Positions 17,301 to 60,820 of a stretch of 64,000 bases of DNA are shown in pieces. This DNA comes from Macrostomum lignano (Eukaryota). A program made the translations under genes and the position numbers. The first letter of the stretch is position 1. Every line of letters begins with the position of its first letter. The stretch is from positions 12,332 through 76,331 of the forward strand of contig NIVC01003797.1 in the NCBI GenBank assembly GCA_002269645.1, given 5' to 3'. The notes under the pieces are model-generated. The model did no database searches and was not told where the DNA came from. It worked only from the letters and a program-made list of their open reading frames with translations.

Positions 17301-20300
17301 TCAGTCTGATTCCAGCCTGAGATTCAGTCTCATTCCAGCCTGAGATTCAGTCTGATTCCAGCCTGAGATTCAGTCTGATTCCAGCCTGAGATTCAGTCTG
17401 ATTCCAGCCTGAGATTCAGTCTGATTCCAGCCTGAGATTCAGTCTGATTCCAGCCTGAGATTCAGTCTGATTCCAGCCTGAGATTCAGTCTCATTCCAGC
17501 CTGAGATTCAGTCTGATTCCAGCCTGAGATTCAGTCTGATTCCAGCCTGAGATTCAGTCTCATTCCAGCCTGAGATTCAGTCTGATTCCAGCCTGAGATT
17601 CAGTCTGATTCCAGCCTGAGATTCAGTCTGATTCCAGCCTGAGATTCAGTCTGATTCCAGCCTGAGATTCAGTCTGATTCCAGCCTGAGATTCAGTCTGA
17701 TTCCAGCCTGAGATTCAGTCTGATTCCAGCCTGAGATTCAGTCTGATTCCAGCCTGAGATTCAGTCTGATTCCAGCCTGAGATTCAGTCTGATTCCAGCC
17801 TGAGATTCAGTCTGATTCCAGCCTGAGATTCAGTCTCATTCCAGCCTGAGATTCAGTCTGATTCCAGCCTGAGATTCAGTCTGATTCCAGCCTGAGATTC
17901 AGTCTCATTCCAGCCTGAGATTCAGTCTGATTCCAGCCTGAGATTCAGTCTGATTCCAGCCTGAGATTCAGTCTGATTCCAGCCTGAGATTCAGTCTGAT
18001 TCCAGCCTGAGATTCAGTCTGATTCCAGCCTGAGATTCAGTCTGATTCCAGCCTGAGATTCAGTCTGATTCCAGCCTGAGATTCAGTCTGATTCCAGCCT
18101 GAGATTCAGTCTGATTCCAGCCTGAGATTCAGTCTCATTCCAGCCTGAGATTCAGTCTCATTCCAGCCTGAGATTCAGTCTGATTCCAGCCTGAGATTCA
18201 GTCTGATTCCAGCCTGAGATTCAGTCTGATTCCAGCCTGAGATTCAGTCTGATTCCAGCCTGAGATTCAGTCTGATTCCAGCCTGAGATTCAGTCTCATT
18301 CCAGCCTGAGATTCAGTCTGATTCCAGCCTGAGATTCAGTCTGATTCCAGCCTGAGATTCAGTCTGATTCCAGCCTGAGATTCAGTCTGATTCCAGCCTG
18401 AGATTCAGTCTGATTCCAGCCTGAGATTCAGTCTGATTCCAGCCTGAGATTCAGTCTGATTCCAGCCTGAGATTCAGTCTGATTCCAGCCTGAGATTCAG
18501 TCTGATTCCAGCCTGAGATTCAGTCTGATTCCAGCCTGAGATTCAGTCTCATTCCAGCCTGAGATTCAGTCTGATTCCAGCCTGAGATTCAGTCTCATTC
18601 CAGCCTGAGATTCAGTCTGATTCCAGCCTGAGATTCAGTCTGATTCCAGCCTGAGATTCAGTCTGATTCCAGCCTGAGATTCAGTCTGATTCCAGCCTGA
18701 GATTCAGTCTGATTCCAGCCTGAGATTCAGTCTGATTCCAGCCTGAGATTCAGTCTGATTCCAGCCTGAGATTCAGTCTGATTCCAGCCTGAGATTCAGT
18801 CTGATTCCAGCCTGAGATTCAGTCTGATTCCAGCCTGAGATTCAGTCTCATTCCAGCCTGAGATTCAGTCTGATTCCAGCCTGAGATTCAGTCTGATTCC
18901 AGCCTGAGATTCAGTCTGATTCCAGCCTGAGATTCAGTCTGATTCCAGCCTGAGATTCAGTCTGATTCCAGCCTGAGATTCAGTCTGATTCCAGCCTGAG
19001 ATTCAGTCTGATTCCAGCCTGAGATTCAGTCTCATTCCAGCCTGAGATTCAGTCTCATTCCAGACAAATTTTAGAGTTCGGCTGGCAAGGGAATACCTCG
19101 TCACTCAGGGGTGACAGGCCGGCAATGTAGTGGCCTCCGGGACCCTCGGCTCGCAGGTAGGCTCCAGAGGGACAATTGAGCAGAGGCGTGGGGAATAGAT
19201 CCTCTTTGCAGTGCAGGTGGTAAACGTAACGAAGGCTGGTTGCATGGGATTAAGGGAGAAAAACAATTATTTCAAAACAACACAGGTGGTCCTTCAGTGA
19301 ACTCTGCTACCCTCAGGGCCTTCAGTGAACTGCTGCTACCCTCAGGTCCTTCAGTGAACTGCTGCTACCCTCAGGTCCTTCAGTGAACTCTGCTACCCTC
19401 AGGTCCTTCAGTGAACTCTGCTACCCTCAGGTCCTTCAGTGAACTCTGCTACCCTCAGGTCCTTCAGTGAACTCTGCTACCCTCAGGTCCTTCAGTGAAC
19501 TCTGCTACCCTCAGGGCCTTCAGTGAACTGCTGCTACCTTCAGGTCCTTCAGTGAACTCTGCTACCTTCAGGTCCTTCAGTGAACTGCTGCTACCCTCAG
19601 GTCCTTCAGTGAACTCTGCTACCTTCAGGTCCTTCAGTGAACTGCTGCTACCCTCAGGTCCTTCAGTGAACTGCTGCTACCCTCAGGGCCTTCAGTGAAC
19701 TGCTGCTACCCTCAGGGCCTTCAGTGAACTGCTGCTACCCTCAGGGCCTTCAGTGAACTGCTGCTACCCTCAGGGCCTTCAGTGAACTGCTGCTACCCTC
19801 AGGTCCTTCAGTGAACTGCTGCTACCCTCAGGTCCTTCAGTTGGCTGGTCCGCTGCCACCCTGACTTAAAAAATAAGCAGAACTCACCGAGGCTCCACCG
19901 GCAGTTTAACTTTGCCAGCAAAATCACCAACGCCGGCCAGGTGCGCCACGTGACCCGCCCAGGGTCCGGCCGCGTTCACAACCACGCCGAAGTTGATGTT
20001 GCGGACCAGGTTGTCCGGGCACTTCACCTGGGATTGGGATGCGAGCGTATTGAGGGTCTCATTAGCTGTATGTGTTGTTTGTCTGCCCGCCTGCCTGCCT
20101 TAACGTCAGTCTACGAGTCTTCAAGTGCCTGTCTTAATGCATGTCTTAGCGCCTGTCCTAGTGCCTGTCTTAGCGCCTGTCTTAATGCATGTCTTAGCGC
20201 CTGTCCTAGTGCCTGTCTAAGCGCCTGTCTTAATGCATGTCTTAGCGCCTGTCCTAGTGCCTGTCTTAGCGCCTGTCTTAATGCATGTCTTAGCGCCTGT

Positions 20301-42100: not shown

Positions 42101-45100
42101 AAACCACATGAAAGGGCCCAGAAAGAGAAGCCATGCAGGAAATCGGAGACAATTGAACCACGATGAAGGAAAGGCCGAGCCTGAATAAACAAAAGAGAAG
42201 CAGGCAAAGAGCACACAAAGCCAGATGATCGGCTGCTCAGCAGAAAAGACCAAGCCGGCTCCCACAGCCGCCTTCTTCCTGCACAGGAGAATTTTCACTC
42301 GCTCTATAGTTTTCATTGCTGGGCCATCCAAACAGCAGCAGCAGGCCAAAGGGATTGGGGCTGAGCAGGGATAGGGGCAAGCAGAAATAGCTCAGACTGA
42401 GTTGAGCCAGACCAGCACGGCTGGGACGGCTGGCAGCAACAGACCCCGGTTGAAGAGGGGAAACTTTTCTCCCCCAGCTCCCAGCGTAAGCGTATAAAGC
42501 AGCCCTCCAGTTAATCTTCTCCCATCTGGTAAAAAGCAGATAGCGCGCGTAACAACAGTTTTCTAAATTGCTATTGTTGCAGAGCATCGCAGATTGTGAT
42601 GCTGACGCATCAGATTTTGAGTCACCGATAGCCGAAATGCAACAGAGACGCAGGGACCGAGGCGGCATAGCCATCCGGCACCGTCTGAGCGCCATCAGCG
42701 AGGCTTCCGACGACCGAGCGACGAGTTCAGCCGATGACGAGGAGATCAACACCAGCATTGCCGAGGTGCGAGAGTTTCACGAGCAGTTCGGCCGTGACAG
42801 CGGTGGCAGGAGCAGCGCCAGCCATCGCTCCGGCAAGCGATTCGCAACGCTGATGCGACCCCAACCGGAGGGTCTGGCCGGCGAGCCGCTCACGCAGCGG
42901 GTGACTCAGCTGGATGAGCAGCGCGATTACCAGCCAGCACTGCTCGGCCTTCCAGGACTTCCAGCAGGTGAGCTGAGGTTTCATTTTGACCAGCAACTGA
43001 GAGCCAATGAAACTAAAAACTGTCGCAGACAGTCTTTTGCTTTCGTTGAATATTTTCCGCTTTCCTAGTTGCTACCTCAGCAAATATCGATTTCAGGGCT
43101 AAGCTAGTACTCACTAAGGGGTTTTCGACGTATTAATTTGCATTATTTATGCGCCCACGAGACCCCAAGTGTTCCAGGCAGTTTCGTGTGATTTACTCAG
43201 AATGTAACTGGACCAACTAGCATTACTAGACCGGCCAATTGGTGTGGGAAAGTCCAAACTAAATGCTCTCGGGGCCCAAAGTATGCGAGAAAGTTGAGCC
43301 TCACCAGCGAATTCTTCCACTCTCTTCTCTCTGCCCTCTCAGGCGGACTCGTGACCGCCGTAGCCTCGTCAAGTGCTCGAATTTTGGACTGCACTTCAGC
43401 CACCGCGCCTGCGGCTGCAGCCTCGGAGGAAGAGGTGGAGGTGCGCGTGACCGCGGAGGCCACGGGGCCCAATCCCAGCGTGGCGCTGGCCAGGGCGGCC
43501 GCCAGGGCAGCCGGAGCTGCTAGTGCGGCAGTGAAAAAGAGCCGCAGCGTTCGAAGCCATTGCGTGAACGCGTCAGAAGCGGAATCGGAGTACCGCATCT
43601 TCATATCAACTTCTTGCACACTGCGAGAGCCGCAGCGCCTAGACGGAGACGGCAAGCTGAAGAACGTAATGAGCTCCACCCAACCTCCCACAGAGGAAGA
43701 CATCGTAGAAATTTTTCAAGTGGCACCTGAGCTGCAAGAGTACCAAAGGTGGGCTGTAACTGGGGCCGGCGATGTTGAGTTCACGTTCATATCGGACAGC
43801 GAGCCTGGCTCACCGACTCCGGACGTGGAGGAAAATCCACAGCCGAGTTCGCGCTCGCAACAACAGTCAGCGCTTCTGCAGGCGACACCAGGTCAACAGC
43901 AAGAGCAGCAGCAGCAGCAGCAGAGAGGACGGTTGCCTGGTCCGAATTCGCTGCAGGCTGACCAGCGCAGGCTGCAGGCTGCTCGAGATGCCTACGCTGC
44001 CGTGAAAACGGTACCCGCGAGGCCCCGACCAAGTCTATCGCTGCCCCGTCTGAGCAATTCCGTCAGCAATGGAGCGGCTGGCGCCACTTCAGTGGTAAAT
44101 CATCAGCGTTGGAGTGACGTCAGCACGAGTTCTGGCAGCCTTCGCCAGCTTCGACGGTTACTGGGTGACGATGAGGCTGTTTACGCCTCCCATTCGATGA
44201 CGGATGGACTGGTGGTGGATCAACAGCAAAGTCGAGAGCTTCAGCAGCGCTCGCAGCCATCAGTAACTGCTCCGAAGTCGGTGTCCCTGTCTGACCTGTT
44301 GGATTCAGACGTCGGAAACAGTGGTAGCATCGATGCTGATGTGTCGCATTCATGCGCTTCTCTGTTGGAAACCGACAATATCAACACATTAACTTCTAAT
44401 GAGTCCTTGAAGCAAAGCCTTAAAAGACTAAAATTGCCCTCTAGCCGTCGGGCCGCCGCCGATCAAGCCAAAGTTAGAAGCGCCAGCTTGTTCTTTGAGT
44501 GGTTGGAGCAGAGAGCGAATTCAGAGCGCGAGCGGAGCATCTGCCGTTCTCTGACTCGACTGGAAGCTCCAGTCTGGCTGGATAACCTTGCTAAAGACGC
44601 ACCGGGACCACTAGATACGTCTCTCCGAGTCAAGGAGAACCGGAACTCATGGAGACCGTCAGCTACATCAATCGAGCCATCGTCATTGATAAAGGGCAGC
44701 GTTGATGATATTACTTGGAAAACGCGTCCGATACACGGCAGTCTCAGCTTACCAATGCGCCTGTCCAAGCAAACCAATCGAAGCTCAGATCATGGAAAAG
44801 CCAGTAGCACTGATGGAAATTTAAGGATCAAGCAGACAAGTGCAGGGACCGATCGACTCGATGGCAGCATCAGCAACCGAGCTCGCTTCTTTACAGAGAG
44901 CAGTCTCAGCCGGCAGGTGCGTCAGGCAGCGGCCGCTCAGCCAAGGCCGCCAACACTCTCAGAGCTCGCGGCCAGATTGCACCGGCCGCCACTGTTGCCC
45001 GTGACTCTGACGCCTGAAGATTTCCAACCGAAAGCTCGGGCTCAAACTATGCCTGAGGAGATTCAACCAATGAGCAGCTCCGACGCATCAGCAGGTCAAA

Positions 45101-46667
45101 AGCGGGACTCGGGCGCTTCTATGGCCTCGCTGACATCCTCGTCATCAACGACGTCGACATCCTCAAATTCTCAGTCATCGTCTGCGACGACTAGTAGCGA
45201 GACAGGAAATTCGGAAGCAGCAGAGAAGACAGAGGAGTCCACAGTAGTTCAGACGTCAATAGTGCAGGTGTACACTCGAGTCCTGCATCCCACTGTTAAT
45301 CACGGACCAGTGACGCAACACTCGGATGCCGAGCTGCTGCCGGGGCTTCTAGCGTGCCAGGTAGACCCGACGGGACCATCGACCGAGAACGATCTGATGA
45401 CGGCACCGAAGCTGTTGAAGCTTGCTGAGGCTCAGATCGAGCGTCAACGCAGCAGACTTGCCGAGTGGCAGAACGATGCCGCCGAAGGTCGACCAACAAC
45501 CGCACGTCAAGAGGAGCTGCTGGCCGTCAATGACGAAGTGCTACGCTACTTTCGTGTCAACAGCGGGGGGCCTGACCGTGCCGATCGTCGTCCGGAGTCT
45601 CCTTCGCTAGCCTACGATGACGTCTTGCAGGTGCTGGGTGACTATGAGGCCTCCAGCAAACTTTCTCGTGTCCTCGTGGCCCTCAGCGGAACTAGAGAGC
45701 GGAAGTTGCAGCAGCCTCAGAGAAGTCTGGCCGAGGCCTGCCATGGCGTGATACGAGAAGGTCAGCACTACTTATTGGAGTGCGCCAACCCGTCTTGCGC
45801 TCGTCGCTGTGACCTTGACAGACGTCTTGCTAACGGCTTCCATTCCTGTCGAGAGTGCCGCACATTTTACTGCAGCCAAAAATGCCGCTCCGATCATGCT
45901 AGAGCACATGGCCGCTCCTGCTGCTGGAATCGAAGAGTGGACGCCTGCAAGAGGGTCATCGCTGGCTGCCTTCTTGCCGACACTTCACCTGCAGTGGTGC
46001 TACTCTCGCGTCTGGCCCGCGCCTCCTCTCGGAGCTTCGGTTGGCGCGGATGTCTCCTGTTGGCACTTCGCGATTCAGCCGCGGCTGCCCGATTCGTAAC
46101 AACCGATGGCAAAGAAGGGCTGATGCGCCCTCCGGCGCTGCTCGACCTGTCAACTCTCTCCGGCGACCTGGCCGACGCGAGCAAATCCTGCAATCCGGAC
46201 GCCGCCTTTGTTGTCTGCGTTGTCGTTGGCACCGGCGTCAAGTGGGCGAAACTCCGTCTGTCGGCGAGGACAAAACAGACGCGGATACAACCGAGGAGGA
46301 CGCAGACGCGGACCGCCGGCGCCGCTGGGCCTACCTGTCGCGGGTGGAGCGATTGCTGCGCGAGCGCGGCGTCAGCCTTCGCCGCCAGTTTCCGCAGCTA
46401 CGAGAGCGGCTCGTCGCCTACGCGGAGACCGGGGCGCCGTTCCTGCCAGCCGTGGTCTACCCCACCGACAGGGCCACCGGGCGGGCGTTTGCGTGCCGCC
46501 TGGCGCCCGACCGCGAGCCGGAACTCGAATGGGTGCCTCTCGCCGTCGCCGTTGCGCCTGAGGAACCAGCAAGTTCAGTCGGCGAAGTCGTGGGCGATGC
46601 GCCACGAGCAAAGCAGCGGCAGCCGCCGTTTTATCGTCGCCGGCGGGTTGTGTCCACCGACCTGTAG
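39101..46667 (+). CDS. AJM1: Apical junction component 1-like protein (AJM1/C9orf172 family). Exons 39101(approximate start)-39629, 40780-40829, 42583-42967, 43343-46667, with an apparent frameshift near 46260-46290
   Basis: GT-AG exons with consistent phases (1,0,1). A long low-complexity region is followed by a MYND-like finger (CANPSC...SCRECRTFYCSQKCRSDHARAHGRSC), SRLARASSRSFGWRGCLLL and, in another frame, RGVSLRRQFPQLRERLVAYAETGAPFLPAVVYPTDRATGRAF, all recalling the AJM1 C-terminal domain. An acceptor at 39060 suggests a further upstream exon. Confidence 0.75.
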
Positions 46668-48575
46668 CTTACAGTTTCCTATGCAGATCATAGTTAATTA
46701 TGCTTTTGTAGAATAAAAACTCTTATTTTGCTACTATTACTAGTAGACTGGCTAGTGAAAACCGAAAATGTTTTTAGCATATATCTTGATTCTGATAAAG
46801 CAAGAAAATAATTTGAGAGTTTGATGATGAGGATAAGGGGGATGGTGACAATACCAGTCATAAAGGTCTTAGCATACTTTGTAAACAAGAGCTCTTAGAA
46901 TCTCAGAAGCATATGCTTCATTTAAGCAAGGTAGTCATAAAAATCCGTAAATATTTATATTTTTGATAGCTGCGTCAAGTTACAAAAGTTTGCTATTTTT
47001 TTCTATCGCCGGATTTAGTCTTCTGCCATTTTTCATCGATCACTGCATCCGAAAGCATGAACTGTTGTAAGATTTTTATTGTTTTCATTTCATCATCTTA
47101 TCTATATAATTTTCGAGATTCTTTTGCTATGAATAAAGTCGTTTTACCCCGCTGTGCGAAGATTAAGTTATCTAAATAACAACATCAGTAATAGCAGGTG
47201 GCTAAATCACCATTTAGATTTTCAGCTGTTACGCAACAAGAGTGTTGGCTTCATTGAAAACCGTGATATGAAGATAAATAAACTGCGTTTTAAAGGCTGG
47301 CCAATTATTCAATACAGTATATAAAAAGGTCTTTTGATTTGAAAAGCGAGTTTCCGCTCCGTAAAAATGATATCTGGTGATTAAAACAAAATGATATGAC
47401 ATTTTACCGATTAACGAGCATTGAAAACAGCCACCAGCTGGACGAGACTTTTCACAGGTTTAGAACACCCATGAGGCTCACTGTGGGGCTCACGGATATC
47501 CAGCTGGTGGCTCGCATTCTGACATATGCTACTGAAGTTCTGATAAAGACTACGCATCTTATAATCCTAGTGAAACTCTCGCGGCCAGAGACTTCTTGAT
47601 GGCACTACTATAGATAACCGCAGTATTTGTCTATCTCAAGCTCGCTGTGACTAAAAGCCTTAGCCGCTGGTAGCTGATATATTTTTGTAATTTATAAATG
47701 AGTCAGTCTGAGTTGTACAGAGCTTTTCCTGTCGAGAATTATACCCACCAGCTTGAAGTCCTGACGGCAATCCCTGAAGTTTATTCTGACCAAGCGAGTG
47801 CGCGCTAGCGCACGAGTGCACGATGTCCTTCACGCACGAGTGAACGTGAAGGAATTCCATTGTCGGATGATTCATCGTGCAGGAATGCACAAAACCGTGC
47901 AGGAATGCATTTCTGCGCCTAATGCTTTTTCAGTGAGATTTTACCATAGACATCCATTCCTGCACGCAAAAGAGTGCAAGAATGCCATTCTTGCATGGAA
48001 AATCAGCCGACAATGGCTTTGCATAGCAGTGTCAGAGTGGCAGCGATAGTCTATGGCCAGCCCTGCTGACAAAGACAGCAGAAGCGGATTTTTTCATGCT
48101 TCGGCGTGAAGGAGATCTATTAGCACCATCTAGTCAGTGAAAAAAATATAAACCAGTTTAGACTGGGCATACATTGTGTTTTGACACACTTTTTCAAACG
48201 GGCACCTTAAAATTTCAACAGTTGTGTCGGCTTTGCATCTCGATTATACTTGGCATCTTCGTAGGCTCTGTCACGAGACTGTCCTGACACCGAGTACGAA
48301 TCGTCGGGGCTTTCAATGATTTCTGCGATGACTTCTCCCAGGCTTGAGTTTAGTAATCTTCTGAATGCCCTCAGCAGTGGATGACGCTGCTGTTCCCAGC
48401 TTGCTGTCTGGTTTCTTCGCTAAAAAAAGCATCCGTAGCTCGTATCAACTTTGCTGCTCGACTTCTCAAACAGGAACAGACGCAACCCATTGCGTTTAAC
48501 TCGCTTAAATCGCCTTTGCAATGTTGGATCTGCACTCGGCTCGATCCAGGTGCAAACAAGTCTTTTCAATACGAG

Positions 48576-50491
48576 TGCAAGGGGTCTACGATGTTTGCCT
48601 GCCGGACGTTTACCAGCCGACGTTTGCCTGCGGGACGTTTGCCAGCCGACGTTTGCCAGCCGACGTTTGCCAGCCGACGTTGGCCAGCGGGACGTTTGCC
48701 AGCCGACGTTTGCCAGCCGACGTTGGCCAGCGGGACGTTTGCCAGCCGACGTTTGCCTGCGGGACGTTTGCCAGCCGACGTTTGCCAGCGGGACGTTTGC
48801 CAGCCGACGTTTGCCTGCGGGACGTTTGCCTGTCGACGTTTGCCTGCGGGACGTTTGCCTGCGGGAAGTTTGCCAGCCGACGTTTGCCAGCGGGACGTTT
48901 GCCAGCCGACGTTTGCCAGCGGGACGTTTGCCAGCCGACGTTTGCCAGCGGGACGTTTGCCAGCCGACGTTTGCCAGCCGACATTTGCCTGCGGGACGTT
49001 TGCCAGCCGGACAGTCGCAGGCGGCAATTGGTTAAAGAAGTATGCCCTCTCTAGGCTTACAACTTGCATTTGAAAACTGTGGACATAGCACTAATAATTC
49101 CACTTTGCTGCCTACTAACTGCTATTAAATATACAGGTTACTACGCTCGTAACAAACTACTTAGAACTTAGAACGCTCTTCGTCTTATTGATATTTTAGG
49201 TAGGTTTTAGTAACATGCATGTATGTACCAAAGCAACTGATGTAACCAAAACTAGCAGAACTAGCAGAACCAAAGCGTCACTGACAATAAAGTCAGTGAC
49301 ATTGTTCTACAATCTACATATATGTAGGCTTAGCCATGACATGCAAAAAAGTTAAAATTGACATAATTCATGATTCATTAGGCTTAGGCCTACACCAGGG
49401 TTAAAAATTTAGACCTATACAGCTGTTTTTCTAGAAGATGCGAACCGATTCTGGTTCTGGAATTGGTAATGTGAAGAGGCTTCAGGCCGGATCATAGAGG
49501 CTTTTCATAGGCCTATTACCAATTCCAGAATTAGAATTGGTTCGGATCTTCCAAGAAAAACAGTAGTATAACTAGGGCCTATTTAATTCTGTTGAATGTT
49601 TGACTGCCTTAACAACCTCACTTAGCACTATTTTTCACTTTCTTCTTGGCGATTGTCATTCAATAATAAAAACTTTATAGCATGTATCTCCCTCTAGTTA
49701 TGGAGACAAAAAGTTATACTTCACAAATTGGTTCTGGTTCTGGGAACAGAACCAGACACCGAACACAAACACAAACACCGAATTCAAATTTTCAAATTAT
49801 TACGCACTACTCAAAACTCCTAATGTTGGTGTTTTATTTTTATTCGCAATCAATAAAATATTATTTCGCCACTCAGCTGAAAATGGTGGGGCATACACGA
49901 AACTTTTTACGAGTATATATTTAGTTTTTATAATGTTACAACTGCTAAATATAGCATAAATATATATAGCTAAATATATAGCAGTTGGCTGGCAAATGTC
50001 GGCTGGCAAACGTCCTGCAGGCAAACGTCCTGCAGGCAAACGTCCTGCAGGCAAACGTCCCGCAGGCAAACGTCGGCTGGCAAACGTCGGCTGGCAAACG
50101 TCGGCTGGCAAACGTCCTGCAGGCAAACGTCCTGCAGGCAAACGTCCCGCAGGCAAACGTCGGCTGGCAAACGTCGGCTGGCAAACGTCCTGCAGGCAAA
50201 CGTCCTGCAGGCAAACGTCCTGCAGGCAAACGTCCCGCAGGCAAACTTCGGCTGGTAAACGTCGGCTGGCAAACATCGGCTGGCAAACGTCGGCTGGCAA
50301 ATGTCGGCTGGCTAACGTCGGCTGGCAAACGTCCCGCAGGCAAACGTCCCGCAGGCAAACGTCGGCTGGCAAACGTCCCGCAGGCAAACGTCGGCTGGCA
50401 AACGTCGGCTGGCAAACGTCGACTGGCAAACTTCCCGCAGGCAAACGTCGGCTGGCAAACGTCCCGCAGGCAAACGTCGCTATCCCGTGCA
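48576..50491. mobile_element. Foldback-like structure: inverted arrays of 14/15-bp modules (GACGTTTGCCAGCC / GACGTTTGCCTGCGG) flanking a ~1-kb AT-rich spacer
   Basis: Plus-oriented array ~48590-49010 and reverse-oriented array ~49985-50478. The outer ends resemble each other (TGCAAGGGGTCTACGA vs reverse-complement TGCACGGGATAGCGA). Confidence 0.65.
49423..49563. other. Long hairpin, 48/49-bp arms with a 44-nt loop
   Basis: Arms at 49423-49470 and 49515-49563 are near-complementary. Confidence 0.85.
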
Positions 50492-51633: not shown

Positions 51634-53556
51634 TTAAAACTTCTTGAAAACCGGATGAGTAACCTCGACGACCACTCGACGTCTACAGCTGCCGTGAGAC
51701 CTCACCTCGAGCCAGTGCTTGCACCGAAACACGAACCCGAAGTACCGAAACGTCTTCAATGCTGTCAGAAGTCGCAGCAGGTCGAAGGCCACATCGAAGT
51801 CGCTGATGCACCGCTGGAACGTCTCTGTGACGAACGCGATGAGAAAGTTCAGCAGGTTGAGGCCCACAAACACGAAGAACAGCACGTGGATGATGAGAAC
51901 CATCACGCTGTCCAAGCTGAAGGTGATCATGTTGAGGATGACCTTGACCGACGAGTAGAGCGACAACAGGCCGGTCTCGAAGTCGGGCGAGTCGACCAAG
52001 ATGAAGAAGTCCAGGCTGAAGAGAATGATCCAGTAGAACAGCAGCGGCAGCGCGGCCAGGAAGCTGGACAGCATGCAGTGGAAGGTGAAGAAGAGCTTCC
52101 CGACCGACTTCGTCACGATCTCCATGTACTGCGCAAAGTGCAGCAGCGTGAACGCGATGAAGAGAGTGTTGGACCCAATTAAAAGCTGTTCCATTACACC
52201 TCTTGGCTCAAAGTATTCATAAAAATTTTTTAGTTGCAGTGCTGAAGCGAATATAAAAAAGCTGATGCCGCTTACGAAAGCCACCGCCTGATAGAAATCA
52301 AAAGTCGAGCGGCGCACAAAGCGCCCAGTTGAGCTGTCGATGGGCGCCACAGTCCTTATCTTTCGCTGGCACTCAACAAAATAGAGCACCAACTTGATGA
52401 GCATAATGACCATATGAAACACGGAGACAAATGTTATCATTAAATAGCTCAAAAGCATCGAGTCAAATAATTCACCGCAACTATAATTCTTTACCGACTG
52501 GCTGTTAAAAATCTCATGGTACAGCGTCGTGTTGGAAAGAGACGATGTGTTGTAGCCTGCCCGAAAAGCGGCGGCAAAGGTTGCTCGGTTGCAGTGAATG
52601 AGGTTGCCAAAACAGGCCACCGTCAGCATGATTGATTCGTTCACAGCTGTGAGAAGAAATACCGATGTTGGAACGCTCATCACCAGCAGCCTCAGAAATG
52701 TGATCGCTCGAGTCTGACGGTACGTCAACCGAAGCCACTGTCGGATGAGAGGGTCCTCCATCAGCTTGGACTTCTTGAGTGACTCGACCTGACTCGACGC
52801 TACATAGGTGAGCAGGTGCAGAGGACTCGAGTTGCACCGGCTCCCGTGACACAGGTCGTAGTCGGTGAGGTCGTAGAGACGGACGGCCCAGCCGCCGGAT
52901 CGAGTCTCCGATTTCAACAGGTAGTTCGGCAGGTGCAACATCTTGCGGGCCAGTCGGAATGCAGCGAACTTCACGCACGCCTCCAGAGGTCGGAGACCGC
53001 TCGAGTCCTCCTGAGTGACCAGCCTGTCTAGCAGACGAGGCTCTCTACTCAGCGTCGAGAGGAGCGCCGTCTCCAGACGCTTGGCTCGCTTGAACCTCGG
53101 CGCGTACATCTGGCAGCGAGCCAGACTGTGTACAACGGTGCTGCCGTCGAGCTCGAGCTGAGCCGCGTGCTCGGAGCTGTCTTCCAACAGAGCCTCGAAC
53201 ACTCGCACGGACTGCAGCAGAATCGCCAGGTGGATCGCGTATCCGAACTGCAGACTGACGAAGCCCCACTTTCGGCGACTTCTCGGCAAGCGACACCGGA
53301 TCTCGTGGCTTTCGGTCACGTCGACCAGAGGCTGGGCGAGCCTTCCCGACAGGTCCGGCTTCAAAGCTCGCATGAAGGCGTCAGGGTCGTCATCGACCAG
53401 AGCAGCCAGCGCCGCCTCTGCTGATTCCATGTTGAACAACTCTTTCAAGTTTGTATCGTTCTGACTCGGCAGCACCCGATTACCTGCAAGAAGTGAAATT
53501 CTGTTGCTGGAGCGAACTCTGATAAAGTCGTTAGTAGCCGGGATCCCTTCGCCCAT
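51634..53556 (-). CDS. Divergent TRPV-like cation channel, copy 1 (640 aa ORF; shared core starts at ATG 53430)
   Basis: Ankyrin-like segments (FGYAIHLAILL, GSTVVHSLA, SSGLRPLEAC), TRPV-type linker (WAVRLYDLTDYD, LMEDPLIRQWL), about six hydrophobic helices, and S6/TRP helix LNLLNFLIAFVTETFQR. Confidence 0.8.
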   Translation of the reverse strand: MGEGIPATNDFIRVRSSNRISLLAGNRVLPSQNDTNLKELFNMESAEAALAALVDDDPDAFMRALKPDLSGRLAQPLVDVTESHEIRCRLPRSRRKWGFVSLQFGYAIHLAILLQSVRVFEALLEDSSEHAAQLELDGSTVVHSLARCQMYAPRFKRAKRLETALLSTLSREPRLLDRLVTQEDSSGLRPLEACVKFAAFRLARKMLHLPNYLLKSETRSGGWAVRLYDLTDYDLCHGSRCNSSPLHLLTYVASSQVESLKKSKLMEDPLIRQWLRLTYRQTRAITFLRLLVMSVPTSVFLLTAVNESIMLTVACFGNLIHCNRATFAAAFRAGYNTSSLSNTTLYHEIFNSQSVKNYSCGELFDSMLLSYLMITFVSVFHMVIMLIKLVLYFVECQRKIRTVAPIDSSTGRFVRRSTFDFYQAVAFVSGISFFIFASALQLKNFYEYFEPRGVMEQLLIGSNTLFIAFTLLHFAQYMEIVTKSVGKLFFTFHCMLSSFLAALPLLFYWIILFSLDFFILVDSPDFETGLLSLYSSVKVILNMITFSLDSVMVLIIHVLFFVFVGLNLLNFLIAFVTETFQRCISDFDVAFDLLRLLTALKTFRYFGFVFRCKHWLEVRSHGSCRRRVVVEVTHPVFKKF

Positions 53557-54423
53557 TACTTTGTGCAGCTGAACAGTTTGCCGCAGAATCAGTCCGATCT
53601 CTGTTAGTTTTCTGGTGCGCTGCTTTTATGAGCTTTGCAAAGTATAGCTGCCAGCAAATCAATATACAGGGAATCGCTGGTCACAAGTGTACATTTTTCT
53701 CCAAAACATTTGACCAGCCTGAACAAACAAAGGCCACTGAACTAGAGTCAGTTCTGGCGATACAGTCAGGCAAGTATGGTTCTTAGTTGTCCTTGGTATG
53801 GTCTCGAGGGCGCAGAGCAAACAACATTATCAAATGAATTGATTTGACGAAGAAAGTAGCCCAATAGTGCTATGTAACTCATTTCTGCATAGCCTGAGTC
53901 TCTATTGCAGTGGAACTTTTTTGGGAGCCAGTCTGAAAAGCAACGGCTCTCCAGCAAAAATTTGCACGTATATGATATTAAAAACTATGGTTGAATTTTT
54001 TAGCCGTTGAATTGAGTAACGATCCGGTTCCAGAAAGGCATCTCCGTATTTGAGCTTTTTAGCATGCAAATTTAAGTTTAAATCTCGATAATCAAGATTC
54101 AATCAAGGGAACTGGCAATAGCTCAAGTCTAGCAACAAATTTCTTGACTGTTTTAAAAACCGACGAAAACTTGTCTACGAGCTCCAATCTCCAAGCCGTG
54201 TTTGCAGCCATGGACATCTGTGCTGTGGTCTGCTCTTCCTTTTACTCCAGTCTTGAGGTCACTATTGGTGGTCCTGTTTTCCTCTGTCATTTGAGCAAGT
54301 CACATGAAAAGCCGTGTTTTCCTGGAGTCCAAAAGTCCTGGAGTCCTGGAGTAAACATGTTTACTACACTCGCTGGCCTGTGTTTACGGGGACCACGACC
54401 CCGGCCTTCTCAAAGGCGGGAGG

Positions 54424-54491
54424 TGACGTCAGTTCTAAAAATAGATACTGAGTCACGCTATCTGGCGCACAATGGTGCAATGGGGATTCCC
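54424..54491. promoter_or_regulatory. Candidate enhancer: CRE, AP-1 and kB-like sites within 68 bp, between the divergent TRPV-like copies 1 and 2
   Basis: TGACGTCA 54424-54431, TGAGTCA 54449-54455, GGGGATTCCC 54482-54491. Motif match only. Confidence 0.35.
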
Positions 54492-55327
54492 AGCATATAT
54501 GTACGGGCCCCCCTCACCCTTGTTTCCGTCAAGGATTTCACTTTCAGTTTCAGTTCTTCTGCTACCATGTTTCCGTCTGTAATACGCCTGACTAAACATA
54601 GACGCCCAAGTCTAAAGGAGGCCTACATCGCCTTCCCAACCACCCACTGGGCCCAGCTGGATCTGCTGACCAGACGCCTTGTTCGTTAATCTTCAAATCT
54701 GCACGCGGTGCTGAGTTCGTTTACTTGTTTATTTTGTTCCGACGGGAAGCCCACCTCATCGAAAGCCGAGACCTGAAGGAACTGGTGGCAGCACTAGCTA
54801 CGCTACGATTGAAGACTCCCGATCAAAAGGACGAAAAGTCAATTTAACTGTGCTGGCGCTGTCCGAGTAGGTAGCACAGGTACAACATTGGTGGCAGCGA
54901 TGGGATTCTGAAGACCTACCAAACCACCCCGAGACAACCATCAATACAACACTTTCGATTGAGTGATAAAGCATATTGTATTTCTGTCTCCAGATCCTAG
55001 TAACTTTCGACGAAGCCGATGTGTGTTAGTGGTAAATTCTACTTTAAATTTGAAAACGAACTCTTTCAATAGCTCGAGACTAATACGAGTTTAAAACTGA
55101 ATATCGGACCCGTTCAACTGGAGCGCCTGAGAGGACAGCTGCTAAACTCAAGTCTAAATAGGAAGACAACGCCCAGGGGTTGCCCAGGAATTCAGGGGAG
55201 CACTGCATTCAGAGCCGTTTGGGAAGTCAGCTGGGCTACTGACAGACGGGCTGAAGGCCAGGGAGCGGTTCTCATAGACCATGACTCTTATTCTCTTACA
55301 CTGTTTCAAAGTGGAAAGGCAAATATA

Positions 55328-57268
55328 GTGGACGCAGATAAAACACTTCTGGCTGACTTCGGTATGCGAGAAATTTTAAAGCAAATCGAAACGCAGCAGA
55401 AGGCACCAAAAAGTGCAAACATGATTCGGGAACGGAAACAAAGCATGGAATCGGCAGAAGCGGCGCTGGCTGCTCTGGTCGATGACGACCCTGACGCCTT
55501 CATGCGAGCTTTGAAGCCGGACCTGTCGGGAAGGCTCGCCCAGCCTCTGGTCGACGTGACCGAAAGCCACGAGATCCGGTGTCGCTTGCCGAGAAGTCGC
55601 CGAAAGTGGGGCTTCGTCAGTCTGCAGTTCGGATACGCGATCCACCTGGCGATTCTGCTGCAGTCCGTGCGAGTGTTCGAGGCTCTGTTGGAAGACAGCT
55701 CCAAGCACGCGGCTCAGCTCGAGCTCGACGGCAGCACCGTTGTACACAGTCTGGCTCGCTGCCAGATGTACGCGCCGAGGTTCAAGCGAGCCAAGCGTCT
55801 GGAGACGGCGCTCCTCTCGACGCTGAGTAGAGAGCCTCGTCTGCTAGACAGGCTGGTCACTCAGGAGGACTCGAGCGGTCTCCGACCTCTGGAGGCGTGC
55901 GTGAAGTTCGCTGCATTCCGACTGGCCCGCAAGATGTTGCACCTGCCGAACTACCTGTTGAAATCGGAGACTCGATCCGGCGGCTGGGCCGTCCGTCTCT
56001 ACGACCTCTCCGACTACGACCTGTGTCACGGGAGCCGGTGCAACTCGAGTCCTCTGCACCTGCTCACCTATGTAGCGTCGAGTCAGGTCGAGTCGCTCAA
56101 GAAGTCCAAGCTGATGGAGGACCCTCTCATCCGACAGTGGCTTCGGTTGACGTACCGTCAGACTCGAGCGATCACATTTCTAAGGCTGTTGGTGATGGGC
56201 ATACCACCAGCAGCATTTTTGTTGACGGTGTTTAGCCAATATGTAATGCTACTTGTATCAAGTTTTGGTTTGCTGATTTACTGTAATCAAGCCACCTTCA
56301 CAGCCGCAGAGAAGCTAGGCTTCAATGAGACCGTGTTGTTGAACTCAACCCTCTTTTGGAAAGTGTTTAATGATCAGACAGTTAAGCAGACCAAGTGCTC
56401 AAGAATCGGCGAGGCAATATTTGTAAACACCTGTGTGATTTTTGCGGTTCTGGTCTTCAAAGTCATCGTAGCCTGCGTGAAGATTGTTCTGTGGCTCCTG
56501 GAGCGGAGTCAGCGGATGAAGCTTCTCACAGCCGACAACTGGCGACCCACCCAGCGATTCGTCCGTAGAACCATGTTCGACGTTTACCTGGCAGTAACTA
56601 TTGCCAGCAGCTCCTGCTTCCTAGTTGTTCTGTTCACCAACTTTTGGGCGAACTACTCAGGATGGTACCGGACACTGCTCCCCATCAACCAGCGGTCTGG
56701 CTGGGTCACCGAGCAGCTGTTTCTCGGCTCGAATGCTTTATTTATCGCATCCGTTCTCTTGCAGTATTCCCAGTATTTGGAGATTGTATCAAGAGGCATT
56801 GGGAAACTGTTTTTCATCTTTCACAGCATGATGACAAGTTTCCTGGCTTCCATGCCTCTGCTTTACTTTTGGATAATTTTGTTTAGTTTGATTTTCTTCA
56901 TCCTGGTTGACACGCAAGACTTTAGCACTGGTTCTCTATCTTTGTATTCATCCGTGAGAGTCATACTGAACATGATCAACTTCAACCTAGACAGTTCCAT
57001 CGTTCTCATTATTCATTTCGCATTCTTTATGTTTGTCAGCATCAACCTGTTGAACTTTCTCATAGCGTCTGTCACAGAGACGTTCCAGCGGTGCATCAGC
57101 GATTTCGACGTGGCGTTCGACCTGCTGCGGCTTCTGGCAGCGCTGAAGACGTTTCGGTACTTTAAGTTTGTACCCCGGTGCAATCACTGGCTAGAAGTGA
57201 GATCTCATGGCATCTGCAGACGTCGGGTGGTCGTTGAAGTTGTTCAACCGGCTTTTAAAAGGCAATAA
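55328..57268 (+). CDS. Divergent TRPV-like cation channel, copy 2 (646 aa ORF; shared core starts at ATG 55445)
   Basis: Paralog of copy 1: near-identical from MESAEAA to LRLLVM, diverged across the membrane domain. Confidence 0.8.
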   Translation: MDADKTLLADFGMREILKQIETQQKAPKSANMIRERKQSMESAEAALAALVDDDPDAFMRALKPDLSGRLAQPLVDVTESHEIRCRLPRSRRKWGFVSLQFGYAIHLAILLQSVRVFEALLEDSSKHAAQLELDGSTVVHSLARCQMYAPRFKRAKRLETALLSTLSREPRLLDRLVTQEDSSGLRPLEACVKFAAFRLARKMLHLPNYLLKSETRSGGWAVRLYDLSDYDLCHGSRCNSSPLHLLTYVASSQVESLKKSKLMEDPLIRQWLRLTYRQTRAITFLRLLVMGIPPAAFLLTVFSQYVMLLVSSFGLLIYCNQATFTAAEKLGFNETVLLNSTLFWKVFNDQTVKQTKCSRIGEAIFVNTCVIFAVLVFKVIVACVKIVLWLLERSQRMKLLTADNWRPTQRFVRRTMFDVYLAVTIASSSCFLVVLFTNFWANYSGWYRTLLPINQRSGWVTEQLFLGSNALFIASVLLQYSQYLEIVSRGIGKLFFIFHSMMTSFLASMPLLYFWIILFSLIFFILVDTQDFSTGSLSLYSSVRVILNMINFNLDSSIVLIIHFAFFMFVSINLLNFLIASVTETFQRCISDFDVAFDLLRLLAALKTFRYFKFVPRCNHWLEVRSHGICRRRVVVEVVQPAFKRQ

Positions 57269-58172
57269 TGTCCTAATCGTCTAAACCAGCGAATACCTTC
57301 GTGGCAAAATCCTTTGTTTGGAAGCTTGATTCGCGATGTTTAGCTGGATTAACTTGATTACAGGCAGGCGATTCAGCTTTCCTAATATTTCTTCATACTG
57401 CTTAGTCATTGCGCAGAATGCTGTGTCGTTTACCTCGGTTTTCTCCCGTCTCAGTCCGTACATCTACGAGTACACTGCTTGAATATTTTGCATTCACGAA
57501 TAAAACGTACTTTGAGCCAACATACGCTCGTATATTCAACTATATTTAATCGTAAGTTTCTGTTGAGTACTACGAGTAGTTTTCACCCGTGAGTGAAACC
57601 AGCTTCATTATAAACCCTGGAAGGCGAGTGTTCAGCAGCTATTGCTACGAGCGTACGTACCGACCAATTTGGAAGGTTACAAATGAAGGTTAGATAAAAG
57701 GCTGGGACGTTCAATATTTATTGGCAGTTTATAGCAATTAATTAAAGGTTGCCCCGAAATACTAAATGACGAAATTAGCACTTGCTCCTAGCGACTCTTG
57801 GATGCTTATCACAGAATCGCGCTTAGAATTTTTATAGTAGATTACGACGCTTGTACAATAATTTACCGATTGTAAAGGAATTACACGTAGTACAATAAGG
57901 GCCACTTCAAAGCAGCAGAGAAGTTAATCCAAGATTTAAAAGGTTTCCAGAAAAACTTTAAGAAAACACATTTGAAAGAGATATGGGATGGGACTTTTGC
58001 AAAGGAAAATAGTGCAAAACGAATGACGCATAAATATGAAACTGCAATATTGTTTTGCGCTCTAAGGTTCATGTTGTACTCGCGACTCTCAGGAATGGTG
58101 CACCTACGAGGGTCAGAGTACGCGGGCCCGTGCTGGCCTGCGTCGGGACGCGAGTGTCCGCACGGGACCCTA

Positions 58173-58349
<177 letters not shown>

Positions 58350-58907
58350 TCACACGGACTGTCCCTGCTACAGCTCCCGAAATGAAGAGACAAGGCAGTG
58401 ACTTACTTCGCGGATAGCTCGCCCTTGCGCGTGCGGTCAATAAATCGTAGCTGAGGTCTGCTCGCGGCTGGCGGACCCGATGGTAAACGTTTATTGCGTA
58501 TGTGTTAGGGGAAGGACGGTCTAAAGACGCTGTAATCGGCGCTCTGGGCCTGCGTTGTAGAGTGCGGCAAACCAAACAACCACGGGCCGACAGCCACCCG
58601 CCCGGCCGCGCCTTAAAATGCCACGACCCTCCCGGACCGGGGGCTCCCCCCCGCCCCACCCCCGCCCCACCCCCGGCCCAGCCACCCACCGGCCAATCAC
58701 GGCGCAGCTGGGGAGGCCAGCCCGGGAGGAAGGCCAAAAAGAAAAGGGCGGCCCAGCCAACCAGCGCGCAGACAACCCAAAGGGCTAAGCGGCTTACACC
58801 GCCGAGCCTATCACACCAAAAACAAATACGGAGCAGAGTGCACTTTGGCAGGGCAAGCGCACGGGCACAACGTTCAGAAAGTCGTCGAAAATCTCTAAAA
58901 GAATGCA

Positions 58908-60820
58908 TTAAATATCCGGCAAAGATTCCATTTCTCGACTACAGGATCTAAAATTTTGCTGCTTCCGCTTGAATTCACTTTTCGAGTACAGCCTCTTGAA
59001 CACCGGTTGAACAACCTCAACGATAACCCGCCGTCTACAGCTGCCGTGAGACCTCACCTCGAGCCAGTGCTTGCACCGAAACACGAACCCGAAGTACCGA
59101 AACGTCTTCAACGCTGTCAGAAGTCGCAGCAGGTCGAAGGCCACATCGAAGTCGCTGATGCACCGCTGGAACGTCTCCGTGACGAACGCGATGAGAAAGT
59201 TCAGCAGGTTGAGGCCCACAAACACGAAGAACAGCACGTGGATGATGAGAACCATCACGCTGTCCAAGCTGAAGGTGATCATATTGAGGATGACCTTGAC
59301 CGACGAGTAGAGCGACAACAGGCCGGTCTCGAAGTCGGGCGAGTCAACCAAGATGAAGAAGTCCAGGCTGAAGAGAATGATCCAGTAGAACAGCAGCGGC
59401 AGCGCGGCCAGGAAGCTGGACAGCATGCAGTGGAAGGTGAAGAAGAGCTTCCCGACCGACTTCGTCACGATCTCCATGTACTGCGCAAAGTGCAGCAGCG
59501 TGAACGCGATGAAGAGAGTGTTGGACCCAATGAACAGTTGCTCCACAGCTCTACCGTTGCTCTGGTCGCTTGGATACAAATTTTCATAGAAATTATCGGA
59601 CCTCAGGAACGTCGCGACAACTAGAAAGCAGATGCCACTCGCGATTGCAACAAAGTGATAAAAATCAAAGATGGCCCGTCGAACAAATCTGTCAAGCAGC
59701 GACCAGTTGTCCGCAGTCAATATTTTTTTCTTATTTTCGTGTTCAAGCGCAGAGAATCCAGTCTTCAGAGCCGCAGTGACGCACATGAAGGCAGTCACGA
59801 GACTAATCACCAGAAAGTTTATGTCGATGGATTGAAGAAATTCTGCACAGCTTTTTGACTTTATTTTTTGCTGATTAAAAAACGTAAAATAAATGGTTAA
59901 ATTGCTCAAAACGCTGGCATTGTATCCTGATGATTTTGCAGCAGAAAATGTTGCTCGGTTGCAGTGAATGAGGTTGCCAAAACAGGCCACCGTCAGCATG
60001 ATTGATTCGTTCACGGCTGTAAGAAGAAATACCGATGTTGGAACGCTCATCACCAGCAGCCTCAGAAATGTGATCGCTCGAGTCTGACGGTACGTCAACC
60101 GAAGCCACTGTCGGATGAGAGGGTCCTCCATCAGCTTGGACTTCTTGAGCGACTCGACCTGACTCGACGCTACATAGGTGAGCAGGTGCAGAGGACTCGA
60201 GTTGCACCGGCTCCCGTGACACAGGTCGTAGTCGGTGAGGTCGTAGAGACGGACGGCCCAGCCGCCGGATCGAGTCTCCGATTTCAACAGGTAGTTCGGC
60301 AGGTGCAACATCTTGCGGGCCAGTCGGAATGCAGCGAACTTCACGCACGCCTCCAGAGGTCGGAGACCGCTCGAGTCCTCCTGGTGACCAGCCTGTCTAG
60401 CAGACGAGGCTCTCTACTCAGCGTCGAGAGGAGCGCCGTCTCCAGACGCTTGGCTCGCTTGAACCTCGGCGCGTACATCTGGCAGCGAGCCAGACTGTGC
60501 ACAACGGTGCTGCCGTCGAGCTCGAGCTGAGCCGCGTGCTCGGAGCTGTCTTCCAACAGAGCCTCGAACACTCGCACGGACTGCAGCAGAATCGCCAGGT
60601 GGATCGCGTATCCGAACTGCAGACTGACGAAGCCCCACTTTCGGCGACTTCTCGGCAAGCGACACCGGATCTCGTGGCTTTCGGTCACGTCGACCAGAGG
60701 CTGGGCGAGCCTTCCCGACAGGTCCGGCTTCAAAGCTCGCATGAAGGCGTCAGGGTCGTCATCGACCAGAGCAGCCAGCGCCGCTTCTGCCGATTCCATG
60801 CTTCGTGTGTTAGAAAGCAT
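58908..60820 (-). pseudogene. TRPV-like copy 3, split by a 1-bp deletion (pseudogene or sequence error)
   Basis: Plus strand CTCCTGGTGACC at ~60378-60389 versus CTCCTGAGTGACC in copy 1. ORFs 60341-60820 and 58908-60344 join into a full-length paralog if one base is restored between 60383 and 60384. Confidence 0.8.

Follow-up and report, generated by a model that had tools for sequence, protein, structure and literature searches.

Three TRPV-like genes within 9.2 kb

The DNA analyzed here is a 64-kb stretch of the Macrostomum lignano genome (record positions 12332-76331 of contig NIVC01003797.1, assembly Mlig_3_7, GCA_002269645.1), referred to below as the window. Within 9.2 kb it carries three intronless, unannotated genes coding for proteins that resemble TRPV-type channels, and these genes are built as a mosaic of near-identical and strongly diverged segments. 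The near-identical segments most probably result from repeated gene conversion between old paralogs. A preliminary description of the sequence had listed three paralogs in -/+/- orientation; the open reading frame (ORF) listing and tblastn agreed with this and revealed no further copy in the window. The last position of the window (64000) is also the end of the contig (NIVC01003797.1 position 76331) and lies 3.2 kb past copy 3. The array may run on beyond this point, and contig breaks often coincide with repeats.

Copies 1 and 2 are intact (Table 1). A hidden Markov model (HMM) of the protein family, from which the window sequences had been left out, matched copy 1 with E = 3e-63 (HMM positions 20-604) and copy 2 with E = 4e-61. 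In copy 1, an AATAAA signal is found 61 nt past the stop codon. The preliminary description had credited each copy with an uninterrupted core coding sequence, which fails for copy 3. The alignment places a 1-bp deletion between window positions 60384 and 60383 (GGTCAC-CAGG vs GGTCACTCAGG), and the frame is broken into ORFs 60341-60820 and 58908-60344. The stop codon has also been lost: the ORF reads 30 codons beyond the stop position of copies 1 and 2, and the nearest AATAAA lies 415 nt past its stop. With these lesions, copy 3 probably represents a pseudogene, though one still involved in the exchange with its neighbors. Database look-ups of the exact products returned no record for copy 1 (640 aa), copy 2 (607 and 646 aa) or the shortened ORF of copy 3.

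In all three copies, the shared ATG is preceded by in-frame ATG codons that no stop separates from it (53431-53556, 55328-55444 and 60800-60820). The corresponding N-terminal extensions comprise 42 codons in copy 1 (from an ATG at 53556, for an alternative product of 640 aa), up to 39 in copy 2 and 7 in copy 3. They are mutually unrelated; translation may start at the shared ATG or further upstream, and copy-specific N-terminal tails may exist. A missing upstream N-terminal exon was considered and rejected, because single ORFs cover the family HMM from position 20-31 to 604 (E = 1e-61 to 1e-63). Retroposition of the copies was set aside, since they share neither 5' or 3' untranslated sequence nor a poly(A) tail. 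The 5' boundary shows no consistent acceptor for splicing or trans-splicing, CATGG being preceded by AG in copies 2 and 3 and by AA in copy 1.

Table 1. Window coordinates of the three TRPV-like copies and of the segments that make up their mosaic
Feature	Position in window	Strand	Description
Copy 1	51634-53430	-	Intact intronless TRPV-like gene, 598 aa from shared ATG
Copy 2	55445-57268	+	Intact intronless TRPV-like gene, 607 aa from shared ATG; frame open upstream to 55328
Copy 3	58908-60799	-	Disabled as assembled: 1-bp deletion, stop lost at family position
Homogenized N-terminal block, copy 1	52678-53430	-	Codons 1-251: ankyrin-like repeats, linker, pre-S1, start of S1
Homogenized N-terminal block, copy 2	55445-56197	+	Counterpart of copy 1 block
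Homogenized N-terminal block, copy 3	60048-60799	-	Counterpart of copy 1 block; holds the 1-bp deletion
S1 helix extension	52580-52677 (copy 1) = 59950-60047 (copy 3)	-	Common to copies 1 and 3 only; 2 differences in 98 bp
Variable, putatively unconverted segment, copy 1	52180-52579	-	400 bp: S1-S2 extracellular loop, S2, S2-S3 loop, S3, S3-S4 loop
Variable, putatively unconverted segment, copy 3	59532-59949	-	418 bp
Variable, putatively unconverted segment, copy 2	about 56298-56720	+	Counterpart of the copy 1 and copy 3 segments
S4-to-C-terminus block, copy 1	51680-52179	-	S4, S5, pore helix, S6, TRP helix, proximal C-terminus
S4-to-C-terminus block, copy 3	59032-59531	-	Equals 51680-52179 of copy 1; 4 differences in 500 bp
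S6 end and TRP helix, copy 2	57059-57148	+	TETFQRCISDFDVAFDLL at 57074-57127; 10 differences in 90 bp against copies 1 and 3 (~90% identity)

The identity of the encoded proteins was examined at the level of sequence profiles and predicted structure. A Pfam search with the three window proteins gave no match, including none to Ank or Ion_trans, and the same was true of phmmer with copy 1 against the PDB and of a word-indexed homolog search with copy 2. An exhaustive phmmer search retrieved 154 relatives at E <= 1e-3, most of them 580-660 aa long; the best match had 27% identity and none exceeded 32%. The family profile, composed of copies 1 and 2 and 24 distant homologs, matched TRPV6 and TRPV5 with E = 1e-38 over profile positions 93-576 (aligned to TRPV6 residues 164-608), followed by TRPV3, TRPV4, TRPV2 and TRPV1 (E = 1e-38 to 1e-28 for TRPV6/5/3/4/2). 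Pfam Ion_trans was matched in 12 of the 26 family members and Ank_2 in five. Several relatives carry Pfam Ank and Ion_trans/PKD_channel domains, and some of the relatives come from the nemertean Lineus longissimus.

A single-sequence AlphaFold model was unusable (predicted local distance difference test, pLDDT, of 41) and was replaced by an alignment-based model of copy 2 (pLDDT 76.5; predicted template modeling score, pTM, 0.73). This model comprises (i) N-terminal helical repeats, (ii) a beta-hairpin at residues 172-187 (strands 172-178 and 181-187) and a C-terminal strand at 589-602, so that the linker-hairpin feature is present in the prediction, (iii) the transmembrane helices S1-S6 with a pore helix at 496-507, and (iv) a TRP helix at 554-573, while pLDDT is low in the loops at 274-318 and 364-377. 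At the N-terminus, alignment of the profile with the ankyrin region of TRPV6 begins at residue 142-164, and the model has paired helices at residues 65-165 (pLDDT 80-92). The best 50 Foldseek matches were all members of the TRPV family (TRPV1/3/5/6, Nanchung-Inactive; E = 6e-11, TM-score about 0.6), with TRPV6 and TRPV5 as the best PDB matches. The earlier designation of the genes as TRPV-like channels is thus supported by the profile match as well as by the fold, and it is the only label used here, leaving room for TRPV proper, TRPVL or another clade.

Like vertebrate TRPV5 and TRPV6 and other TRPV channels (best PDB matches, e.g., 5wo8 and 7s88), the window proteins align over the full-length profile and have predicted repeats, hairpin, six transmembrane helices, pore and TRP helix, and strand. 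The sequence identity to those channels, however, is only about 12-17%, the N-terminus is shorter and the genes are intronless. The TRP box also differs: the canonical motif is WKxQR and the family consensus is LQRL, whereas the window proteins have DLLRLL, without the conserved tryptophan. The proteins are predicted to form tetrameric channels, each subunit having six transmembrane helices and a TRPV-type fold, and cation conduction is their presumed function.

Near-identical blocks in otherwise saturated genes

The three copies were aligned with MAFFT and identity was followed in 50-bp windows. The flanks are unrelated, with identity starting at the C just before the shared ATG and, between copies 1 and 3, decaying shortly before the stop. 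The sharp identity blocks noted in the preliminary description were recovered both by sliding-window identity and by the maximum chi-square method, and the breakpoints given there proved correct to the base. Over the first 753 bp, copies 1 and 2 differ at seven positions, copies 1 and 3 at five and copies 2 and 3 at six, one gap being included in each of the last two counts. Copies 1 and 3 share two further blocks (Table 1), and their identity in the segment between these (52180-52579 vs 59532-59949) amounts to about 45-50%, with a range of 44-66% in 50-bp windows. Copy 2 had been described as diverged over the membrane region and converging again for about 90 bp, which was confirmed for the sequence past 56197 and for the stretch covering the S6 end and TRP helix. 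A constant pore part is accordingly a property of copies 1 and 3, not of copy 2.

The breakpoints with the maximum chi-square values were located at 52677/56198 (362), 52579/59949 (197) and 56198/60047 (341). In 1000 shuffles the highest chi-square was 21 and none (0/1000) reached the observed values. When mapped onto the structural model, the 753-bp block spans the cytosolic domain and reaches the start of S1; the 98-bp block corresponds to S1 and the 500-bp block to the part from S4 to the proximal C-terminus.

The proportions of synonymous (pS) and nonsynonymous (pN) differences were obtained for each segment from Nei-Gojobori counts. In the N-terminal block pS is only 0.016-0.027 in all three pairs. 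In S1 it is 0.12 between copies 1 and 3 and 0.74-0.78 against copy 2; in S4-S6 the corresponding values are about 0.025 and 0.84-0.85. The variable segment is saturated in all three pairs (pS 0.81-0.91) and has a pN of 0.40-0.45, compared to 0.18 in S4-S6. Near-identical synonymous sites directly beside saturated ones cannot be explained by constraint on the protein, and they identify the blocks as patches of recent common DNA ancestry within old genes. The flanks, which are unalignable up to the ATG and from shortly before the stop, likewise indicate that the loci are old and only the coding patches are young.

Divergence within the patches is not uniform. Between copies 1 and 3, pS increases from about 0.02 in the N-terminal block to 0.12 in S1, and it climbs toward the 3' end from about 0.025 (S4-S6) to 0.09 (TRP helix) and 0.22 (last 39 codons). 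In copy 2, the TRP-helix codons have a pS of 0.34 vs 0.84 in the adjoining S4-S6 codons, which suggests that the S6/TRP-helix patch of this copy is an older or rarer conversion tract. Grading of this kind at the edges is expected from numerous tracts whose end points vary, and together with the intermediate pS in the TRP helix of copy 2 it suggests several tracts of differing age.

The blocks are also set apart by the G+C content at third codon positions (GC3). In the N-terminal block GC3 is 0.76-0.77 in all copies, and in the TRP helix 0.80-0.87 (copy 2, 0.80). In S4-S6 it reaches 0.92-0.93 in copies 1 and 3, compared to 0.56 in copy 2 (Fisher P = 9e-11), although the G+C content at codon positions 1+2 of this region is similar (0.35 in copies 1 and 3 vs 0.30 in copy 2). 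The segments regarded as unconverted have a GC3 of 0.38-0.67 (variable segment, 0.47-0.67), and the neighboring gene has 0.57. The transition is abrupt: in 25-codon windows across the S4 boundary of copy 1, GC3 runs 0.44, 0.40 and then 0.96, 0.96, 1.00. Increased GC3 in converted regions, an accepted signature of repeated GC-biased conversion, served to recognize regional conversion in the fugu protocadherins (PMC1852091). Such steps inside the blocks point to repeated GC-biased gene conversion and are the strongest evidence added by the present analysis.

Probable interlocus gene conversion and competing explanations

The reading that we consider probable is that the three genes are old paralogs in which patches have been homogenized by repeated non-allelic (interlocus), GC-biased gene conversion. 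The proposal of the preliminary description that the N-terminal and gating parts are being converted gains support from the contrast between a pS of ~0.02 and saturation, from the GC3 steps and from the edge-graded divergence. The starting point would be paralogs of a lineage-specific, intronless family of TRPV-like cation channels, whose non-coding flanks and S1-S4 regions had diverged to saturation. Recurrent interlocus conversion would then keep certain patches near-identical, namely the first 753 bp in all copies and, between copies 1 and 3, S1 as well as the region from S4 through the TRP helix, with the S6/TRP-helix codons of copy 2 having been converted less often or longer ago. GC-biased conversion would drive the converted patches to their very high GC3. 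The tracts would end where homology runs out, which is the case at the ATG, close to the stop codon and on either side of the segment from the S1-S2 loop to the S3-S4 loop. Low constraint in this segment may have permitted divergence until it was too great for heteroduplex formation, so that conversion could no longer cross it, while the more constrained parts would have retained enough similarity to keep converting. The exchange is presumably still ongoing.

The most direct competitor is a small number of isolated events without continuing exchange, such as unequal crossing-over, template switching, or a long conversion that was later overwritten in its middle by an unseen paralog, so that the same N-terminus and pore came to be pasted onto different membrane segments. 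The similar divergence of all blocks (pS 0.016-0.027) is compatible with one burst, and with the contig ending 3.2 kb past copy 3 there may be donors outside the assembled sequence. A single event, however, would not lift GC3 to 0.76-0.96 within the blocks only, and the edge-graded divergence and the tract of intermediate age in the TRP helix of copy 2 (pS 0.34) speak for several events at different times. We therefore regard such a one-off origin as unlikely. Still less credit can be given to an artifact of assembly or polishing, with the near-identity arising as reads were corrected, collapsed or polished with short reads across paralogs. Mlig_3_7 was assembled with Canu from PacBio continuous long reads and polished with Pilon, the genome is repeat-rich and partly duplicated, and only 64% of its bases were rated error-free by REAPR (PMC5730564); moreover, the window stops at a contig end. 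Against this, the blocks (0.5-0.85 kb) are far below read size and bordered by unique sequence, each block still has 5-7 private differences, the breakpoints preserve the reading frame, and the GC3 step is present in each copy on its own. An identity of about 50-60% cannot become 99% in this way, and collapse or mis-polishing cannot explain the mosaic.

Several points nevertheless weigh against repeated conversion, or limit what can be said of it. With three copies in one assembly, there are too few sequences to fix the donor, the direction or the number of events. Read correction or polishing could have inflated the identity within blocks slightly and created the frameshift of copy 3, although the deletion is not located in a homopolymer. 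In principle, the high GC3 may have come from a donor rich in G+C and need not stem from long-term biased conversion. The GenBank annotation records no gene over copy 1, so that expression is unproven. Finally, other arrays of the family (that of Lineus and two of the animal contigs described below) lack the mosaic, and the pattern is therefore no rule for the family.

The preliminary description likened the diversification of the S1-S4 region to that of variable arrays of sensory or immune receptors. On this view, selection would diversify a "sensor" cassette and conserve the rest of the protein, perhaps with exclusive expression. The S1-S4 bundle binds ligands in TRPV channels, and the variable segment does span this bundle and the extracellular S1-S2 loop, with a pN of 0.40-0.45 vs 0.18 in S4-S6. 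The ratio dN/dS, however, is not estimable in this segment because its synonymous sites are saturated, and no value above 1 can be demonstrated. The claim of differing N-x-S/T sites was only partly upheld: two sequons (residues 294 and 300) line up in all three copies, and an additional one (NYS) is restricted to copy 1. Two cysteines of the S1-S2 loop also occupy the same columns in all copies. Among the 24 distant homologs, pairwise identity is 0.12-0.14 in S1 and the variable segment vs 0.26-0.32 in the N-terminus, S4-S6 and TRP helix. Since the segment is the least conserved region throughout the family, ordinary low constraint suffices as an explanation, given that conversion would stall where homology is insufficient. 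There is likewise no large intact repertoire in the window, which holds three copies of which one is frameshifted, although more copies may lie past the contig end, and there is no annotated transcript. The receptor-diversity proposal is thus left unsupported, and we consider it very improbable.

Two further ideas concern the possible consequences of the mosaic. It is conceivable, although rather doubtful, that concerted evolution of the ankyrin/linker part and of the pore, TRP helix and C-terminus has been selected for co-assembly of heterotetramers, with the differing S1-S4 modules forming a combinatorial sensor. In TRPV tetramers, contacts between subunits are made by the ankyrin/linker and pore/TRP-helix/C-terminal parts. 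Should selection for compatible subunits indeed underlie the pattern, concerted evolution would be tied to the assembly of heteromeric channels. The other idea starts from how the N-terminal blocks are arranged in copies 1 and 2. Together, positions 52568-53431 and 55444-56307 make up an inverted repeat of 864 nt with 94% complementarity, nearly perfect along 753 nt; it encloses a 2,012-nt spacer holding both 5' regions. Recombination between the arms would flip the spacer and thereby exchange the upstream regions. A promoter swap by inversion between the 753-bp repeats around the 2-kb spacer is more speculative still.

Relatives, known systems and surroundings of the array

Loci of relatives were fetched from Lineus longissimus (LOC135496280/81) and from three animal contigs (L003, L005 and L008). 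In every one of them the family members are single-exon genes, often in local arrays. These invertebrate arrays belong to the same family as the window genes (E = 1e-15 to 1e-3, about 25% identity, 580-660 aa), but none shows the sharp GC3 steps of the window. The Lineus locus contains at least four head-to-tail copies, which are uniformly 94-97% identical including their flanks and represent a plain young tandem duplication, while L003 and L008 contain uniformly old pairs.

In L005 (7589-21362 of ENA ERZ25069296, ctg22560_3x_l), six intronless family members are arranged head-to-tail within 14 kb. The third of them (518 aa) has ~30% nucleotide identity to the others and aligns poorly; it may be degenerate or mis-called. 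In the pair E4/E5, pS falls to 0.06-0.22 over codons 90-210 and to 0.12 over codons 450-480, compared to 0.4-0.98 elsewhere. This pair appears to be a weaker, partly similar echo of the domain pattern of the window in an independent array, without a clear GC3 step. The mosaic is recurrent, yet it is no rule for the family.

The closest parallel among known systems is the regional gene conversion of the variable exons of clustered protocadherins in fugu, zebrafish and human (PMC1852091; Noonan 2004, cited there). In both cases neighboring paralogs share a block of >99% nucleotide identity beside a strongly diverged block of the same exon, synonymous sites are homogenized, GC3 is raised in the converted part and the diverged part is extracellular. 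The differences concern (i) the proteins, which are six-transmembrane channels here and cadherins there, (ii) the arrangement, with three genes in mixed orientation here and tens in tandem there, and (iii) the presence here of two separate converted patches around a diverged one. Shared constant exons and alternative promoter choice are not known for the window genes, whose diverged part gives no support for positive selection. Literature searches revealed no report that genes of TRPV/TRP channels, or of M. lignano, undergo gene conversion or concerted evolution. Regional interlocus gene conversion as a kind of process is known, and the family and organism are new; the case is mechanistically ordinary and textbook-clean.

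The three unannotated TRPV-like genes add members of a fast-evolving, intronless invertebrate family to the inventory of a regeneration model organism. Trees, orthology calls and selection tests on such genes are to be done segment by segment. The GC3 and codon-usage statistics of multigene families in M. lignano can likewise be shaped by conversion. It should be noted that genes of this species contain 4.9 introns on average and that its GenBank annotation is transcript-based (PMC5730564).

The sequence of the window is eukaryotic and very rich in minisatellites. No match was obtained in Rfam and tRNA scans of the window, nor in a Pfam search with its other long ORFs. The sole annotated gene nearby is BOX15_Mlig007662g1 (43294-46716; 1234 aa); an 813-aa stretch of this ORF is 100% identical to the M. 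lignano hypothetical protein of that name. It has no Pfam match, is of low complexity and rich in Ser and Gln, and carries a Cys/His-rich, zinc-finger-like motif near the C-terminus (CANPSCARRCDL...CRECRTFYCSQKCRSDHARAH).

About 20 distinct tandem arrays are found in the first 25 kb of the window, which agrees with the 15% of simple and tandem repeats reported for the genome. One of them is a 4-kb minisatellite (15101-19063) composed of 172 copies of a 23-bp unit with 98% matches. Just downstream of copy 1, two arrays of one 14/15/29-bp unit (48589-49012 and 49987-50479) occur in opposite orientation (CGACGTTTGCCAGC vs GGCTGGCAAACGTC); they bracket ~1 kb of unique sequence and give rise to long ORFs, all spurious, in several frames. 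A GC-rich stretch that directly follows copy 3 on its downstream side (58345-58951) has overlapping ORFs on both strands with proline- and glycine-rich, low-complexity products, and it stands where copy 1 has an AT-rich 3' region with AATAAA.

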